From Diplonema japonicum (Eukaryota; Protista; Euglenozoa: Diplonemea): 64,000 nt of DNA. The stretch covers positions 1 to 64,000 of the forward strand of contig OZ025760.1 in NCBI GenBank assembly GCA_964019335.1, written 5' to 3'. Shown here in pieces: positions 1-8,239 of this stretch (positions are counted from its first letter, which is position 1; each line of letters opens with the position of its first letter). The translations under genes and the position numbers were made by a program. The notes beneath the pieces were generated by a model. That model searched no databases and was not told the DNA's origin. It saw only the letters and a list, made by a program, of their open reading frames with translations.

Positions 1-88
1 GGGTTTGCGGGTTTGCGGGTTTGCGGGTTTGCGGGTTTGCGGGTTTGCGGGTTTGCGGGTTTGCGGGTTTGCGGGTTTGCGGGTTTGC
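1..88. repeat. (GGGTTTGC)n octamer tandem array, 11 copies, open at the window edge; reads (GCAAACCC)n on the minus (sense) strand
   Basis: Perfect 8-nt repeat from base 1 to 88. The last base is shared with the TAG stop of the AlkB ORF. Confidence 0.97.
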
Positions 89-1200
89 TAGGGGGGTATG
101 TGGGTGAGCTCGGGGCCAACCGCACGCAGGGTGATCGACACCCTGACACCAGTGGACACCCCTGACGGGATGTGGTGTGTCCACTGGTGTCTAGCTTCGC
201 CTTCCAACAGTGCCCATGAGAAGGGGGGCACCAGGTACCTCGCTACCCTGTCCCCCTTCCTCATGACCATTGTGGTCTCAGCCCCGTACGACAAGACTAG
301 GACGACCGGTCCCAGTCTTGCGTCGTCCTTGTGGGCGGCAATCCCACAACCAGGTCTGTACTTATTCACAAGTACCTGGTTGGGGACCACCTTGAGCCCT
401 GCGGCGGCGGCCACCTCCCTCACCCACCCCTTTGCCTCCCCTGGGATGCCGGTGGTGGGGCGCACCTCGGCGTCCGTCCCCTCCCACCGGTGCCCATGCT
501 GGAGCGTCTCCCTCCCCGTGTTCCCTGACAGGGCCTCCCACTTCCCGGACAGCAGAGCTTCTGGGAAGGCGGGGGCAGCACCTGTCTTCAACCCGGGGGG
601 GTGCTCACCATCTTTCAGTATCCACCCTTCCCCCTTTTTCTTCTTTTTTTTTTCCTCTTCAACTATGGCAGGGTCGGCTGCGGAGGTCGGGCTTGCGGCA
701 GGGGCGGCTGCGGCGGTCTCAGTTGCGGCAGGAGCGGCTGCAGCGTTCAAGGCGGCAGGGGCGGCTGCGGCGGTCTCAGTTGCGGCAGGGGCGGCTGCAG
801 CGTTCAAGGCGGCAGGGGCGGCTGCGGCGATCGTGGTTGTGTCGGTCGTGGCTGCGGCAGGGGCGGCTGCGGCGTTTGGGGCGGCAGGGTCGGCTGCGGC
901 GTTCAGTGCGGCTGGGGCTGCTGCAGCAGTCGTGCTTGCGGCCGGGGCGGCCGTGGCTGTAGCAGGGGCTGCTGCTCCCTTGGTTGTGGCGGTCAAAACC
1001 GCGGTCTCTACTTGTGATTTTTTTTTTTTATTATTTTTTTTTTCTAAAGGGGGGTGGGGGGATCTAGGGGGTGGGGATTCATACTGCCCAACCAGATTGC
1101 CTGGTTGGGTGGGTCTCGGCGCCGTGCACTGCGGGCTGCGGGCTTGCTCCTGCGGGCTGCGGCTGCGGTCACCTCCTCCTGCGAGTCGTCTTGGATCCAT
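88..1200 (-). CDS. AlkB-family 2OG-Fe(II) dioxygenase with an Ala/Thr/Pro-rich repetitive N-terminal region
   Basis: C-terminal PNQVLVNKY..G.GIAAHKD...LSYG...LEGEARHQWTHHI...RVSITLR contains the HxD...H iron triad and the RxSxTxR 2OG-binding motif. The first ATG (1200) follows an A-run. A 66-bp internal duplication lies at ~690-830. Confidence 0.88.
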   Translation of the reverse strand: MDPRRLAGGGDRSRSPQEQARSPQCTAPRPTQPGNLVGQYESPPPRSPHPPLEKKNNKKKKSQVETAVLTATTKGAAAPATATAAPAASTTAAAAPAALNAAADPAAPNAAAAPAAATTDTTTIAAAAPAALNAAAAPAATETAAAAPAALNAAAAPAATETAAAAPAASPTSAADPAIVEEEKKKKKKGEGWILKDGEHPPGLKTGAAPAFPEALLSGKWEALSGNTGRETLQHGHRWEGTDAEVRPTTGIPGEAKGWVREVAAAAGLKVVPNQVLVNKYRPGCGIAAHKDDARLGPVVLVLSYGAETTMVMRKGDRVARYLVPPFSWALLEGEARHQWTHHIPSGVSTGVRVSITLRAVGPELTHIPP

Positions 1201-1372
1201 TTTTTTTTTTTTTTTTTGTTTTATAGTGTGTGTTGGGGGGGAGGGGATCCTTTCGTTGAGCGGCGGGCAGGCCGACGGGCAAAACAACCCCCCCGGACGA
1301 CGGCGACGACGGACGACGGACGCAGCGGCAAACCCAGGCAGAGGCGGCAGGCACCAGCAGAACACGAACGAC

Positions 1373-1410
1373 CAATAAAGTACAGAAACTGTAGCTTTAG
1401 AATCGTTGGT
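1373..1410 (-). other. Genomic spliced-leader exon copy (38 nt), followed by GT
   Basis: Minus strand reads ACCAACGATTCTAAAGCTACAGTTTCTGTACTTTATTG|GT. This matches the euglenozoan SL 3' consensus CAGTTTCTGTACTwTATTG and the diplonemid AACCAACGATT.. 5' end (recalled from memory). Identical to 4027-4064. Confidence 0.93.
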
Positions 1411-1455
1411 ACTGGAGCTTTAGAATCGTTGGAACTGGAGCTTTAGAATCGTTGG
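1411..1455 (-). repeat. Two tandem partial SL copies (CCAACGATTCTAAAGCTCCAGT[T]) upstream of the full SL
   Basis: 22-nt and 23-nt units corresponding to the SL 5' two-thirds; both carry the same A>C change. Confidence 0.9.
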
Positions 1456-1626
1456 CTCTATCCCATCCACGACCAGTCGCTCGAATTTCTTTTCGGCTAA
1501 CCCTTTTGGGTCATATTTCGATGGTTCAAGTGATGTTGATGATGATGATGTTACTGATGATATCGATTTTGATGATGATGAGGGGAGGGGATTGGCGCGT
1601 GAGTGGGGGTCATCGTTCACTTCATG

Positions 1627-3847
1627 TCACTTCGCGCACGCTCGGCAAACACACACCATACAATCCTGCTGGAGGCACTTTACACCTTGTCTCTTCTTCG
1701 TGAGGGCCTCCCCACAAACACTGCATCCCGCGTCCCAGTGATGGAACACATTGTTGAAAACGTGTGAGCTCCCGGTCGCTTTGCAGATTCTCCAATCGCA
1801 ATCTTCGTCCTCGTCCTCTCCCTCTGGTTCTCGTTCCATTTCCTCGTCTTCTTCTGTTGGTGGGGGTCCCAAGTCGTCGTCATCGTCCGTAAAGTCAAAA
1901 GATTGTTCTTTTCCTTGGGCTATTTTCTGTGCGAAGGTCTGTCCAAGGGGGGCCGGCCCGCTCTTAACCTGCTTCATCAGTTCCCCGATCTGTTTGGACA
2001 TCATGTCCATTTGCGTCCCCATTTTCTGGACTTCCCTCTCCAGTCGGGCGTTTTCCTGCCTTAGCCTCTCTACCTCCGCTGTAGGTTTGACCTCCGGTGT
2101 CGGTCCTCCCGCGATCTTTTTAAGGGCGCGCTCGATGGCGGTGAGCCTGTCTTCCACTGCAGAGGTTTGTTGTTTGTTCTCTGCTGTCTTTGTCCGATTG
2201 CTTTCCGTGTCTGGCGGGGTCGCTTGTGCTGGGCCGTGGTCCCCCCTGTGTCGGGCCATTCTTGAGAGCGTTCAGGAACGACTTTCCCGGTGTTGCCGCC
2301 CTGCCCCACACCTGGGTTGTCCTCGGCTTACCGTTCGGTGGTGGTCCCTCATCCTGAGCAATCCTGCAATGCAGAACGTCCCCCTGCGGTCCCGTAATAC
2401 GGAGGAATGTCGTTGGCGGTTGCGGTCCTCGTATCAGCCAGCACTTCGTGTTGCCCGCCCAGCTGCCGCGCACAGGTACACCATTCCATCCTATGGCTCG
2501 CAGGATGTGTCGCACCTGCACTTCCCCCGCCTCACGGTAGAGCCCCGAGAGTCTCCACATCGGCTCCCCGTGTTGTCCGCTCTTCCTCGTCTCCTCTCCG
2601 AGTATTCGGCTAAGCAGCGGAATCTTCCCTTCTTCTGTGGTTCTGACACCTAGTCTCCCGTCGGACTCCCTCAGGGCCAGGCCGTGTCCCTCGCCGAAGC
2701 TCAGCGCCTGTTCCAGCGTGGTCTCTTTCGGCAGCCATGCAACTGGCTGCGGCTTGCCATCCCTTGGTTTGATGAAGACCCCTTTGCTTCCGGACCCCTT
2801 TACCATGTTGGCGAGCTCGACCTTCGGCAACGTCACCAGTGCGTCTACGTGGGGGTTCGGGCTGCTCGACACCTTGGACACTGCTATGATCGACTCGAAC
2901 TTGAGGACTTCTGTCAGCCACTTCCTTGGCGACGTTGCCGCCGTCTCCCACAGTGAAGAAGGTACATATGCCTTCGGTATGATTACCGCTGCCCTGCTGT
3001 AGTGCTCCCCTAACTTTACGTCCCGTGTGTCCTCCCTTGTGACGCGTTCTATTTTTCCGGATAGTAATAGCACGAACATCCGTCTGTTGGAGTATGCCTT
3101 CCCATCTTGCAGAACGATGTCGTGCTTGTGTCTTCCTTCACCGTCCTTCTTCAGCAATAAGGCCTTGTTCCCCGTCCACTCCTGTCCTGCTGCCTCCTCC
3201 ACGCACTTTTCACTGGCCATCGCTACCCCGTCCTTGCCCTCGAGTAACTCCTCCCACGTTACGAAAGGGACGTTGTACTGGCCGCTTTCTAGCTTCCACG
3301 CCCTTTCCTCCTTCTTCGTCATCCTTGCTTTTCGCTGTGGTTTGCCGACCACCGTCCACGCCTTCTTCTGTCCATCCGCTACGGGGACCCCTACTTTTGG
3401 GGGGGTGAAGTCCGTAGCTGTCACCCCTTTCAGTGCCGACGGTGTCCTCGGCTCGATGACGCCGTAGAAGGACTTCCCGTCGAAGGCGATGTGGACCGGC
3501 TTCTGTCCCTTCTTCGGTTTCCCAGGCACCGGGTAGACGATGAAGGTGTCCCCTGAGAAGGTGGCGACGTTGATGTCCATCCGCGTGGCCCTAGCCACTG
3601 CCAGCACACAGACCAGGTCTGCGCTCGTCCCGTCCTTCGAGTGGGCGACACAGTACTCGTCGTAGTCTGTGCCTTCCTCAAGGAGCTTCGTGTACTCCTT
3701 GTCGTTGCCCCGCAGCTCCTGCACCATGAGGCGCCGCACCTCATGTCCCTTCTTTCCCGTCTTCGACCCCGCCACCGCGTACAGCCCTCCGGCTCCTCCC
3801 TCCAGCCCCAGGCCGTACCCGCGTAACCCCGCTCGCAGTCTCTCCAT
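1627..3847 (-). CDS. LINE ORF1: degenerate OTU-like domain + gag-like ORF1 domain + coiled coil + Cys/His zinc finger; split by one frameshift near 2245
   Basis: N-terminal H.VR..MV..L...Y.EY....KDG...AVA...DINV...VHIAFDG..FY follows the OTU pattern but lacks the catalytic Cys/His. ORFs 2120-3910 and 1627-2259 join by a 1-nt change at a G6 run (2241-2246), which may be a sequencing error. Confidence 0.65.
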
Positions 3848-4026
3848 ACTGCTCGTCCTCTGCTCTGCTTCCTTTTTTTTTTTTTTTTTTTTACTTCTTG
3901 TCAACTTCAATGTCTTCTTTTACCCTCTTTTAGCTCTCTTTTCTGCGATCTGCTTTCTCAACTTCTTTCAATTTTCTTTCTTTACAAACCGTATTACCTA
4001 TTGACTTTATTGGCACGGTCGGACAC

Positions 4027-4064
4027 CAATAAAGTACAGAAACTGTAGCTTTAGAATCGTTGGT
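4027..4064 (-). other. Genomic spliced-leader exon copy (38 nt), followed by GT
   Basis: Identical to 1373-1410; located only ~190 bp past the stop codon of the upstream host gene. Confidence 0.93.
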
Positions 4065-4255
4065 ATAAATAAGAAAAAGGGATCGGTAACGTTGGGGGGG
4101 GGGGGGGGGGGTTTCTCTTCTGTTCAGAAAAAAGAATGAGAGATTTCTACTTTTATTGGGCCTCATTATGATAAAACAATCGGAACAGACAGAGTCAACA
4201 GTGAATCGGCAATGTAGGATCCTAGGAGAAGTGTTGCGACCTACGAGCTTGAGAA

Positions 4256-7200
4256 TCATGAAGCAATCATGTCATCTGGAAACGCAACATCATTATCCTG
4301 CCCACCCATCTCCACTCCATCGTCACCGTACTCCTGTTGGTGTCGCGTGTAGGATCCCTCACATACCAGTAGCCCCATCTGCGACGCGAGGTTCATCGCG
4401 CTACCCTTCGACCTCACCTTCCACCACAGGCAACCAAACACAAGCACCAAGACTCCCAGCACACCAGCCACAGCCGCCAAAACCACCAGCATGACATTGC
4501 CACCACTCCCGCTGGGGGCAGGCGTAGGCACTACCGTACCGACACCTGCTGGCTCAGTGGTCACCGGTGGTACAAGGGTAGGTGCTGCCTTGTCTTCAAC
4601 TAAGGTGATAGTGAGTGTAGATGAATTACCCTCTGGCTCGAGAGCGGGCACACTTGTTGGCACCGCAGTGCTTCCAGCCGGAAGTTGGGTAGTTCCTGGT
4701 TCTAGAGTGGGCGCATTAGTAGGAACTGCACTGCTCCCTGGTACAAGGGTAGCTGGTGCTGCCGTGTCTACAACTAAAGTGATTGTGGGCGTAGATGAAT
4801 TACCCTCTGGTCCGCGAGTGGGCACACTTGTTGTTGGCACCGCAGTGGCCGGAAGTTGGGTTGCTGGTACTACAGTGTCTATTACTACGCAAGCATCTCT
4901 CTCGTTCCAGTAGCAGACCCGGTTTGCATTACACTTTGCCTCGCTAGTCGCAGTGCACTTTTCAGCACAGCCGACAGTGTCCTCCCAGCTGCATGCGGAA
5001 TCTTTCTCACAGGTAGTCTTCTTCTGGTAGGTGCAGGGTTTCTCCTCACATGTCTGACTGATGCTGTACCACACGCACCCATCAGGGTCATTAATGCAGC
5101 TCTGCTCAATGGAATGTACGCACCTTCTGCCAACGCAGCCTGTGCCATCTGTCGACAGCTTACATTCAGCATCGCTGGTGCACTCGTTAACTGAGAGAGC
5201 ACTGCACACAACGCGTGGCTTCTCTTGGCACAGGTGTTGTGAAGCGTTCCAACTGCAGCCGTCTTTTATGCATGCAACCTGGTCTGTACAGTGCTGCATG
5301 CACGGAGAGGATGCGCACAACAGCTTTGACTCGTCCCACACGCAGTTGGAGTCGGTGTTGCAGCTTTTTTTCACTGAGTAAAGTGCACACGGTTGGTGCC
5401 CGCTTGCGTTTCGCGCAATAAAAATCCCGAACTTCGTGTTTGGACTGCAAATACCGTCGAGTAGGTTCGGCAGTGTGCCGAGTTGAATGTTTTCGGAATG
5501 ATCGTCTATCGGGGTAGACACGACGGGCTTCAAAGCATCTAATGCTTCGGTGTCAACATCCGTGCTTGTACTGGTCCTCCTGATAACTATTCCGAACACC
5601 TTCACCTGTACCTGCGAAAGTCTACCAAGCGCGACTCCTAAAGGAACAGAGTTCCCATCAACGATGCTCCCGTCTGCAACGATGACAAGCACCCTCTGCC
5701 TTCCGTCAGCAGGCGATGCCTTGAACATCTCCACGGCCAACTCAAGCCCCTTCTCAAGAAAGGTCCCACCACCGTAGAAGTTGTCCTCCTGCCAGTCGAT
5801 GTCAGAGCTCAGCTCTTGAAGGCTACCAGTAAGACTTCCTGAAGAACCGACACCAGCAGGAGTGACCAGAGCACCTGCCGCGTTACCCACACTTGAGAAC
5901 TGCACGACCCCCACACGCACTTTCTCAGTGCCGCTCCTCGAGGATTTCCCAACACTCCCAATCTCTCCGCTCAAAGGAAGGCCAGCCACCCAACTTCTAA
6001 TCATCTCCATCACAGCCTCAAAGCCGTTCGGGTGGCGTCCGAATTGCATCGTCATCGACAGTGAACCGTCAACAAGGAGTACGAGGTCCAGTGTTGGGCA
6101 CAACCCGTACTCTTGAGCTGTGCAGAAGCCCTTGCTGTTCCAGAAGCAGTCTCCATCTCTTCCGCAGCTGCACATATCGAGCATACTGCACTCTTTCTTG
6201 ACGCACTTGTTATTTTCATACACGCACGAGAAGAAGCTGTCGCATTTCAGTTTGTCACTGTTCATCGTCGCACACTGCGTCATGGCGCACTGCCCGGGAC
6301 TTATCGAAATGTCCCAGTGGCAATCCGAGTCTTTGTAACAAGAAGCTTCAGAGGACTGGGTACACGGCTTCAGAACGCATTCGCTCCCCTCCCAATCGCA
6401 TTGTAAATCACTTTCACACGTTGCCTGGTCACCGTGGGAGCACAGCACCCAACAGGAAGGGCTTTCAGTACCGTTCACCTTCTTCCATTGACAGCTATTC
6501 ACTGTGTCCGCAACGCAGCTGGACTCTTCGCAGTGAGCCATGCAAGAAGAATCCTCGCACACCAAGGCCACGCTGCTCCATATGCAGCCTGGGTCGCTAG
6601 TGCATCCTGTCCGGAGGAGGTGCTGCGAGCACGGCTCATGCATCCCATCCTGGAAAGCAGGTATGAGGAGCTGGCCCCACATGTTCGGGTCGCAGATCCC
6701 GTTTAGGACCTTATCAGGCATCTCGTCGATTGGTATATTTATGAAGTGCTCGTCGTGCGGGTCGGAGGTGATCGGCTTCAGGATAAGTTCGGCATCGTCG
6801 TCGAGTTTGGTGCGTGCTGTTGTTCTCCTCAACACCACACCGAAGATCCTCACACCCTCAGCCAAGAGCACCGCCCTTTGTGGCACAGAGGAAGCATCGT
6901 CATTGATGGGGCCGTCTGTCACGATGATGAGCACCTTCTGCCTCGGGGGGGAGTTCTGGAACATGGCACCAGCCCAGTTAAGACCAGTGCTGATCGTGGT
7001 GAGCCCCTGCATGAAATTCGCCTCGTGCCAGTCAATGTCGTCCTGCAGTTCAGTGAGGTCACCGGTCAGGCTGCCCGAGGAGCCCACGCCGACTGGGGTT
7101 CTCACCGCCTCTGGGACTGGACCAGAGAACTGGATGATGCCCATTCTGAGCCCGCCGCTTGAAGCAGTCGAAGCCCTGCCGACTGTGTGGTCTTCGCCCG

Positions 7201-8239
7201 TAAGGGGAAGGGTGCTTACCCAATTCCTCATCATCTCCATTAGGGCGTAGAAACCGTTCGGGTGACGCCCGAAGGACAGCCCCATCGAGCCAGAACCGTC
7301 AAGAAGCATCACCAGGTCTAGCACGGGGCACTGCTCGTACTTCCTCCCCACGCACCTCGGGACGGAGGGGCGCACGTCCCAGTGACACCTGTCGTCTGCA
7401 CGGCACTTGCAACTGTCGAACTGGCTGCATTCCTTCTTCACACACTTCGTCTGAGTCGCATTCCACATGCACTCATCCTCAGCGTTGCAATCAACGATAT
7501 CCTTCACCCTGCAGCGCTCCTCCTTGCACATGACATCTGGCGTGCTCACGTCATATTGGCAGCCGGGATTCTTCAAGCATTCCTTCTCATTGGGGTACAA
7601 CACACAAGGAGCAATGACGCAGGTCGTACCACCAGCCAAGAAGCAGAACGGGTCGGCTTCGCACATAGCTCCTCCGATGTAGTCGCACTTCTTAGTCCCA
7701 CACATGCCACGCACAAGGTCTACAGTACCACCGCAAGCAGTCGTCGCAGCAGCCACGTCCAAAGTGGTCCCGAAGTTCCATGTGAGGCTCCTCTTGCCGT
7801 TGTCGTTCGACTTAGTAGTAAACTCGATGCTGTCCATAACCTCAGCAAACTTGTCGCTTGTCAACCCAGACACCGCCAGAGAACCACCCTGTACGTCCAC
7901 GGTAACACCCGCAGCACTGCAAGCACCGCAAGTAAGGGAATCTTTTCCACGCACGTATCCGTCGCCGATGCGGACGAAAAAAGAATCTAGCGAAGCACAC
8001 GCGCAGCTGGGGTTACACTTGGTCCCAGGGAACGGCTTAACAGGCACCAGCACCTCGTAGGTGGCAGAAGCGCTAGAAATGTCCGAGTAGACAAGCCACT
8101 CGCAGCCAGTGTCCATTGTACAATTCACTTCCGTGGTGTGCTGGCAAGGGACGGGCGTGCAAAGAGCTATGGGAACACACAAGGCTGCCAGCGCTAGCAC
8201 TGCCACCACGCGGTGCATCTTTAGCGCAGGTCTTTTCAT
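4256..8239 (-). CDS. Type I membrane protein with two vWA domains, Cys-rich repeats and a mucin-like stalk
   Basis: Signal peptide; two LDLVxLxDGSxS MIDAS motifs; many CxW/CxxD repeats; duplicated Thr/Pro stalk (~4570-4870); C-terminal TM segment. Confidence 0.9.
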   Translation of the reverse strand: MKRPALKMHRVVAVLALAALCVPIALCTPVPCQHTTEVNCTMDTGCEWLVYSDISSASATYEVLVPVKPFPGTKCNPSCACASLDSFFVRIGDGYVRGKDSLTCGACSAAGVTVDVQGGSLAVSGLTSDKFAEVMDSIEFTTKSNDNGKRSLTWNFGTTLDVAAATTACGGTVDLVRGMCGTKKCDYIGGAMCEADPFCFLAGGTTCVIAPCVLYPNEKECLKNPGCQYDVSTPDVMCKEERCRVKDIVDCNAEDECMWNATQTKCVKKECSQFDSCKCRADDRCHWDVRPSVPRCVGRKYEQCPVLDLVMLLDGSGSMGLSFGRHPNGFYALMEMMRNWVSTLPLTGEDHTVGRASTASSGGLRMGIIQFSGPVPEAVRTPVGVGSSGSLTGDLTELQDDIDWHEANFMQGLTTISTGLNWAGAMFQNSPPRQKVLIIVTDGPINDDASSVPQRAVLLAEGVRIFGVVLRRTTARTKLDDDAELILKPITSDPHDEHFINIPIDEMPDKVLNGICDPNMWGQLLIPAFQDGMHEPCSQHLLRTGCTSDPGCIWSSVALVCEDSSCMAHCEESSCVADTVNSCQWKKVNGTESPSCWVLCSHGDQATCESDLQCDWEGSECVLKPCTQSSEASCYKDSDCHWDISISPGQCAMTQCATMNSDKLKCDSFFSCVYENNKCVKKECSMLDMCSCGRDGDCFWNSKGFCTAQEYGLCPTLDLVLLVDGSLSMTMQFGRHPNGFEAVMEMIRSWVAGLPLSGEIGSVGKSSRSGTEKVRVGVVQFSSVGNAAGALVTPAGVGSSGSLTGSLQELSSDIDWQEDNFYGGGTFLEKGLELAVEMFKASPADGRQRVLVIVADGSIVDGNSVPLGVALGRLSQVQVKVFGIVIRRTSTSTDVDTEALDALKPVVSTPIDDHSENIQLGTLPNLLDGICSPNTKFGIFIARNASGHQPCALYSVKKSCNTDSNCVWDESKLLCASSPCMQHCTDQVACIKDGCSWNASQHLCQEKPRVVCSALSVNECTSDAECKLSTDGTGCVGRRCVHSIEQSCINDPDGCVWYSISQTCEEKPCTYQKKTTCEKDSACSWEDTVGCAEKCTATSEAKCNANRVCYWNERDACVVIDTVVPATQLPATAVPTTSVPTRGPEGNSSTPTITLVVDTAAPATLVPGSSAVPTNAPTLEPGTTQLPAGSTAVPTSVPALEPEGNSSTLTITLVEDKAAPTLVPPVTTEPAGVGTVVPTPAPSGSGGNVMLVVLAAVAGVLGVLVLVFGCLWWKVRSKGSAMNLASQMGLLVCEGSYTRHQQEYGDDGVEMGGQDNDVAFPDDMIAS

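Follow-up and report, generated by a model that had tools for sequence, protein, structure and literature searches.

The window analysed here is a stretch of 64,000 nucleotides from the diplonemid Diplonema japonicum (positions 1 to 64,000 of the forward strand of OZ025760.1, assembly GCA_964019335.1; contig C113 below). It opens with a short perfect tandem repeat, beyond which lie, on the minus strand, the remains of two retrotransposons, each headed by a DNA copy of the spliced leader (SL), which we take to be of the diplonemid type (Table 1). Read on the minus strand, the repeat is GCAAACCC, running 5' to 3' towards the end, and window base 1 is the end of the contig in an assembly of 62.5 Mb and 132 pieces. 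Further inward, the last host gene before the end (4256-8239, minus strand) is predicted to encode a cysteine-rich, internally duplicated protein of 1327 aa, whose start resembles a signal peptide and which has a transmembrane-like stretch close to the C-terminus.

Table 1. Features at the contig end of the window (window positions)
Feature	Position	Strand	Remarks
Terminal repeat	1..88	.	11 units of GGGTTTGC on the plus strand, 100% identical; base 1 of contig C113 is the first base of the array
Dinucleotide TA (same on both strands)	89..90	-	Separates the array from the truncated element; a fortuitous TAG arises together with base 88
Open frame, 425 aa, first ATG at 1199	88..1365	-	Low-complexity Ala/Thr/Pro repeats, then an AlkB-type 2OG-Fe(II) oxygenase domain
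5' part (~1.3 kb) of a telomere-associated LINE	91..1372	-	Cut within the tail of the first ORF; 93-97% identity to the best sister copies
AlkB-type domain	124..528	-	PF13532, residues 280-414 of the frame, E=2.9e-14
SL DNA copy, 38 nt, ACCAACGATTCTAAAGCTACAGTTTCTGTACTTTATTG	1373..1410	-	Heads the AlkB element
Additional partial SL heads (two), 22-23 nt	1411..1455	-	Same A>C change in each
CCAA microhomology	1452..1455	-	Common to the broken LINE (GAG CCA A/AC CCG, slash at the break) and the SL 5' end (CCAACG); inside the telomere-like octamer
3'-truncated, SL-headed APE-type LINE	1452..4064	-	SL at 4027-4064; ~4 kb (APE, RT) missing

The terminal array of the window is one of many. Arrays of the same unit begin at base 1 of contigs C1 and C4 too, and another occupies the last positions listed for C3, near coordinate 1,000,000, presumably the end of that contig. 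Such arrays terminate five of the six chromosome ends that were fetched and 24 of 40 further sampled contig ends; in all, no fewer than nine ends besides these 24 carry one. Their polarity is uniform, left ends reading 5'-GGGTTTGC and right ends GCAAACCC-3' wherever an array is present, the opposite polarity occurring at none of the 24 array-bearing ends among the 40 sampled. The canonical arrangement, in which the G/T-rich strand runs towards the end, was thus not encountered: the strand that ends 3' at the terminus, GCAAACCC, has four C, three A and one G, and the 5' end of the G-rich strand coincides with the contig end, which inverts the orientation of a canonical left telomere. A first-pass annotation, made from the letters of the window, had described the G-rich strand as facing inward, opposite to a normal left telomere, and this observation has been borne out. 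Two arrays of apparently interior position, in C20 (near 401.5 kb) and C64 (near 166 kb), were rejected as interstitial telomeres, since both abut scaffold gaps of 200 N and are therefore contig ends as well.

The genome note for D. japonicum describes a 62.3-Mb assembly built from PacBio HiFi and Hi-C data, and telomeres are not mentioned in it (PMC13598402). Because the assembly is HiFi, nanopore miscalls are excluded, and the notion that the repeat is a nanopore or base-J miscall of TTAGGG was rejected. The 8-mer is also very abundant in Logan contigs that represent another, independent study of this organism, and it occurs as a word in no paper of the library searched. We conclude that, at the level of assembly and contigs, the 8-bp array is the chromosome-terminal repeat of this species, and that its polarity is the reverse of the canonical one. 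To our knowledge, this reversed polarity contradicts every described telomere.

The element next to the array is incomplete. The translation of its open frame shows the HxD, H and RxxxxxR residues, and on the minus strand the junction with the array reads ...ATA CCC CCC TAG CAAACCC (GCAAACCC)n, the G of TAG being the first base of the first full unit, with no 3' UTR and no poly(A) at the junction. Seven sister copies (86-97% identical) share this sequence up to ...ATACCCCCC, past which they read CAG GAA GAC CCA..., and all seven continue for 20 more codons to a stop of their own and run on into an element of ~9.5 kb; likewise, in Logan contigs from two independent studies sister copies read through both junctions. 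Since the seven sisters read through, the TAG of the window is a product of the junction and not a feature of the element. The earlier claim that the repeat begins within the AlkB stop codon, with neither 3' UTR nor poly(A), accordingly stands as a description of the junction, and fails in so far as the stop was taken to belong to the element. What had appeared to be an RT-less AlkB cassette is the stump of a full LINE, comprising ~1.3 kb of element, then TA, then the array, and it has been deprived of ~8 kb that include the native 3' end. At its other extremity, the reiterations of the SL head differ between copies, so that the extra partial heads in the window are to be regarded as products of the 5' junction and not as a fixed part of the element.

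The full element, as found at the left end of C75, consists of an SL head, an AlkB ORF of 325 aa, an ORF of 288 aa and a large ORF of 2318 aa, the last of which contains an OTU domain (E=4e-12) and a reverse transcriptase, RVT_1 (E=2e-16). Among PDB structures this reverse transcriptase best matches R2 proteins (E=6e-7, as against 0.03 for L1). In the AlkB LINE no APE domain was found with Pfam and no CCHC motif by pattern search; a stretch of the form RPAD...MDVVIV...K, recognised by eye alone, resembles PD...D...K, so that the element may belong to the R2/CRE/SLACS-type LINEs, which have a restriction-like endonuclease of the PD-(D/E)xK kind at the C-terminus. The sense strand of the element points towards the chromosome end, and nearly all copies of the family are situated at scaffold gaps or no more than ~10 kb from a contig end. 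Its native 3' end (...CCCCCTTTTTAAAAAAA) occurs 61 times, nearly always a few kb from a contig end and pointing outward, and in only five of these 61 cases does the repeat follow within 9 nt, the other native ends leading into unique DNA or directly into the SL head of the next copy. At the sampled ends, some arrays join the element within the large ORF, some within the 3' UTR, and some adjoin other DNA, the overlap being 0-3 nt. Since arrays thus occur at many truncation points and at only 5 of 61 native ends, the repeat is not carried along by the element as a tail. The junctions of truncated copies with arrays could reflect erosion and subsequent healing, or else internal priming of reverse transcription on the G-strand.

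Of twelve other 5' junctions of the AlkB element, some are in unique DNA, some in telomere units, and some follow another copy of the element; those in unrelated unique DNA have overlaps of 0-4 nt, and in two other copies a telomere unit meets the SL at CAA/AAC, in the manner proposed below for the window, as GCAA/CGATTC and GCAAAC/AACGATTC (the slash marking the join). The tables of both 5' and 3' junctions are samples, not censuses.

Two further observations concern the structure of this family. At C75:400-510 (minus strand of L015) a native 3' end is followed by 2.5 telomere units, a run of 50 A, an internal element fragment of 257 nt and the terminal array, an arrangement which suggests a retrotransposed read-through transcript that had been polyadenylated. 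In addition, the first ~1.3 kb of the AlkB LINE, from the SL head to AlkB, exists in two versions that are ~82-85% identical, the remainder of the element being 98-99% identical (C38, C79, C84, C20, C39, C62 and C80 compared with C75 and C9); the subfamilies look mosaic.

The proximal retrotransposon is of another kind. In the window its ORF1 is in two pieces (2120-3910 and 1627-2259), after which come an in-frame TGA, a linker of 52 codons and the first five codons of a 2A-like motif (VDGIEP...), and the element ends at ...GTG GAT GGG ATA GAG CCA A. The interior of other chromosomes harbours four near-full copies (96-97% identical) along with several partial ones, and all copies that reach past the break read GTG GAT GGG ATA GAG CCA AAC CCG GGA CCC, that is VDGIEPNPGP; in the intact copies this is followed in frame by Exo_endo_phos (E=1e-10) and then by RVT_1 (E=4e-24). 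Here the first-pass annotation proved perceptive, both in noting that the upstream unit ends at GAT GGG ATA GAG CCA A and has CCAA in common with the partial SL, as seen at 1452-1455, and in predicting that an unbroken copy would read DGIEPNPGP and go on into APE and RT.

The organisation of this LINE (L072:252-5828, C95 and all other copies) comprises an ORF1 of 781 aa, a conserved in-frame TGA, the open 52-codon linker, the 2A motif, APE and RT. ORF1 has only sub-threshold Pfam matches, to OTU and otubain. Judged from its reading frames, the arrangement suggests that the downstream domains may be expressed by stop-codon readthrough followed by 2A skipping.

The position of the break in this LINE provides the link between the two retrotransposons and the terminal repeat. 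On its sense strand the 6.9-kb element contains a rotation of the telomere unit only once, as the octamer CAAACCCG, situated in the codons for P-N-P, and the window copy is broken after the third base of this octamer. In the register of CAAACCCG the repeat unit matches this LINE site at eight of eight positions. The chance of a break falling inside the octamer is about 9/6900 (~0.001, or once per ~750 breaks), and on this account the likeness of the octamer to the terminal repeat is almost certainly the cause of the break site. Elsewhere in this LINE family the 2A site is intact in all ten cases, six of them identical and four related, that of the window alone being broken. With these ten sites empty, and with the AlkB family found almost only at contig ends, homing of the element to the 2A codons is not supported; the seeding of a telomere at a telomere-like site, or joining by microhomology there, is likelier than homing to NPGP.

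We consider it probable that positions 1-88 of the window are the physical chromosome end, at which the reversed repeat caps the stump of an AlkB LINE, and that the 2A LINE was cut at an octamer acting as a seed. From the anatomy of the locus, the comparison of copies, and the position and polarity of the array, all of which can be read directly, we infer the order of events and an origin of the repeats by telomerase. An earlier loss of the chromosome end would have reached the 2A LINE, whose CAAACCCG octamer would then have seeded a new telomere. The AlkB LINE would subsequently have inserted at this seeded telomere, its cDNA joining the proximal DNA by means of CCAA, common to the octamer region and the 5' end of the SL (CCAACG). 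In a last step the distal ~8 kb of this AlkB copy would have been removed and the resulting end capped with TA and repeats, giving the TAG by accident. Telomere units are absent today from the junction of the LINE with the SL head, and for this reason seeding at the LINE is a step that we infer. The more general proposition, that the reversed telomere is real, that interior octamers seed new ends and that the NPGP octamer is a natural healing site, we put forward tentatively, our reservations slightly outweighing our confidence in it.

One could instead suppose that the octamer served as a one-off pseudo-target, the AlkB LINE having cut CAAACCCG in a complete LINE, of which the distal part, together with the old end, was later lost and the terminus re-capped. 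Such a course of events would account for the exact coincidence of the break with the one telomere octamer on the sense strand of the LINE, and it accords both with the association of the AlkB family with telomere repeats and with terminal loss and re-capping being common at other ends. Yet none of the ten other 2A octamers of the LINE family is occupied, the confinement of AlkB copies to the last ~10 kb of contigs and to scaffold gaps speaks against it, and the 3' junction able to prove it is gone; we regard this explanation as unlikely.

It is considerably less probable again that the 8-mer is a subterminal satellite, with a true canonical telomere lying beyond it and missing from the assembly, in which case the reversed polarity would be an artefact. 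The arrays in the assembly are indeed short (in the stretches examined, 19 bp to at least 416 bp), and the ends are known from contigs. However, at more than 30 HiFi contig ends the sequence stops within an array and no other DNA lies beyond it, four consecutive TTAGGG units are absent from the whole assembly, and the sampled contig ends that are without the 8-mer have no other repeat in common.

Slightly more improbable still is plain coincidence, namely that the LINE broke at random, that the AlkB cDNA was joined at the nearest CCAA and that the overlap with the octamer is meaningless. CCAA is expected about once per 256 bases, and other copies have joined unrelated unique DNA with the overlaps of 0-4 nt given above, but the chance of ~0.001 of hitting the single octamer in a 6.9-kb element argues against it.

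The model of the first-pass annotation, in which (GCAAACCC)n is the 3' tail of the AlkB unit, homing to the NPGP codons of LINEs, so that the array would resolve into ACCCGGGACCC... and then APE and RT, is hardly tenable: intact LINE copies do read DGIEPNPGP, APE and RT, the unit does match the site and in some copies the repeat does adjoin the native 3' end of the full element, but the array runs out to the contig end (base 1 of C113), most sampled ends are capped by it, at varied truncation points and whatever lies beside it, the window copy is 3'-truncated and hence without a native tail, the ten other 2A sites are unoccupied, and none of the 12 other 5' junctions lies in a LINE, let alone in a 2A site. 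A retroelement parasitising the 2A sites of LINEs is thus an attractive idea but a wrong one, and the AlkB cassette on which it was built is a LINE stump.

In the preferred reading, of a seeded and later rebuilt end, the repeats would be made by telomerase; a single TERT-like ORF of 1083 aa is present at L078:2509-5760 (C41:533008-536259). It matches Telomerase_RBD and RVT_1 in Pfam with weak scores of 23.8-28.4 bits, and its nearest protein-atlas clusters are all TERT; a phmmer search of PDB sequences gave no match. The 8-mer would presumably be made by telomerase on a putative RNA template of the GGGUUUGC type.

Telomerase-type telomeres consist of short repeats, such as the TTAGGG of kinetoplastids, and chromosome healing is the de novo addition of such repeats at seeds. 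The ends of D. japonicum resemble these systems in having a short perfect terminal repeat of uniform polarity, joined to truncated DNA with an overlap of few bases, and in the presence of a TERT-like gene, and differ from them in that the unit, GCAAACCC, is of 8 bp and the 3'-ending strand is C/A-rich, not G/T-rich. A second comparison is with the telomere-repeat-specific LINEs TRAS1 and SART1 of Bombyx mori and the telomeric elements GilM and GilT of Giardia. Like these, the AlkB LINE is found almost only at ends, in one orientation, and beside or between telomere repeats; unlike them, it has an apparently R2/CRE-like RT, no APE domain that could be detected and a copied SL head, encodes AlkB and OTU, and directs its sense strand towards the end.

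The proximal LINE in turn recalls the trypanosomatid elements of the ingi/L1Tc type, which are APE LINEs with an N-terminal 2A peptide. Here too, an xIExNPGP motif, 2A-like by sequence, stands directly ahead of APE and RT in one frame. In the diplonemid LINE, however, a G replaces the D of the consensus (DGIEPNPGP), the motif is placed after an in-frame TGA and a 52-codon linker, behind a 781-aa ORF1 with a weak OTU-like match, and the copies bear SL fragments at their 5' ends. As to the repeat tails of CR1, L2 and RTE elements, a likeness exists in so far as the 8-mer can follow the native 3' ends of the full AlkB LINE; it does not extend to the rarity of this event (5 of 61 native 3' ends, within 9 nt), to the truncation of copies at their 3' and not their 5' ends, or to the capping of other truncation points by the same 8-mer.

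If the reversed polarity is true, the chromosomes of this organism are capped with a C/A-rich 3' strand, against the one feature common to all telomerase-made telomeres, and assumptions on G-overhang binding proteins and on G-quadruplexes would fall with it. The window would in addition constitute a concrete and datable example of the rebuilding of an end, by two successive truncations, each of them capped or re-used, and one of them located exactly at a telomere-like octamer in the 2A codons of another retrotransposon. Were octamer seeding also true, each copy of this LINE would offer a latent point of breakage and healing to a genome divided into about 120 small chromosomes.

Some minor observations bear on the SL and on the arrays themselves. 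In both elements of the window the SL is directly followed by GT. Matches of ~100 nt (85-90%) to window positions 3977-4078, spanning the SL, some bases upstream of it and ~50 nt downstream, occur at about 30 interior loci, which could represent heads of related LINE families or sequence resembling SL-RNA genes. Finally, blocks of the variant units GCAAACCCC, GCAAAACCC and, in its reverse-complement form, GGGTTTTGC are present in some terminal arrays, namely at the right end of C24, the left end of C105, the right end of C35 and in the gap-side array of C64, and these could serve as reporters of template use.
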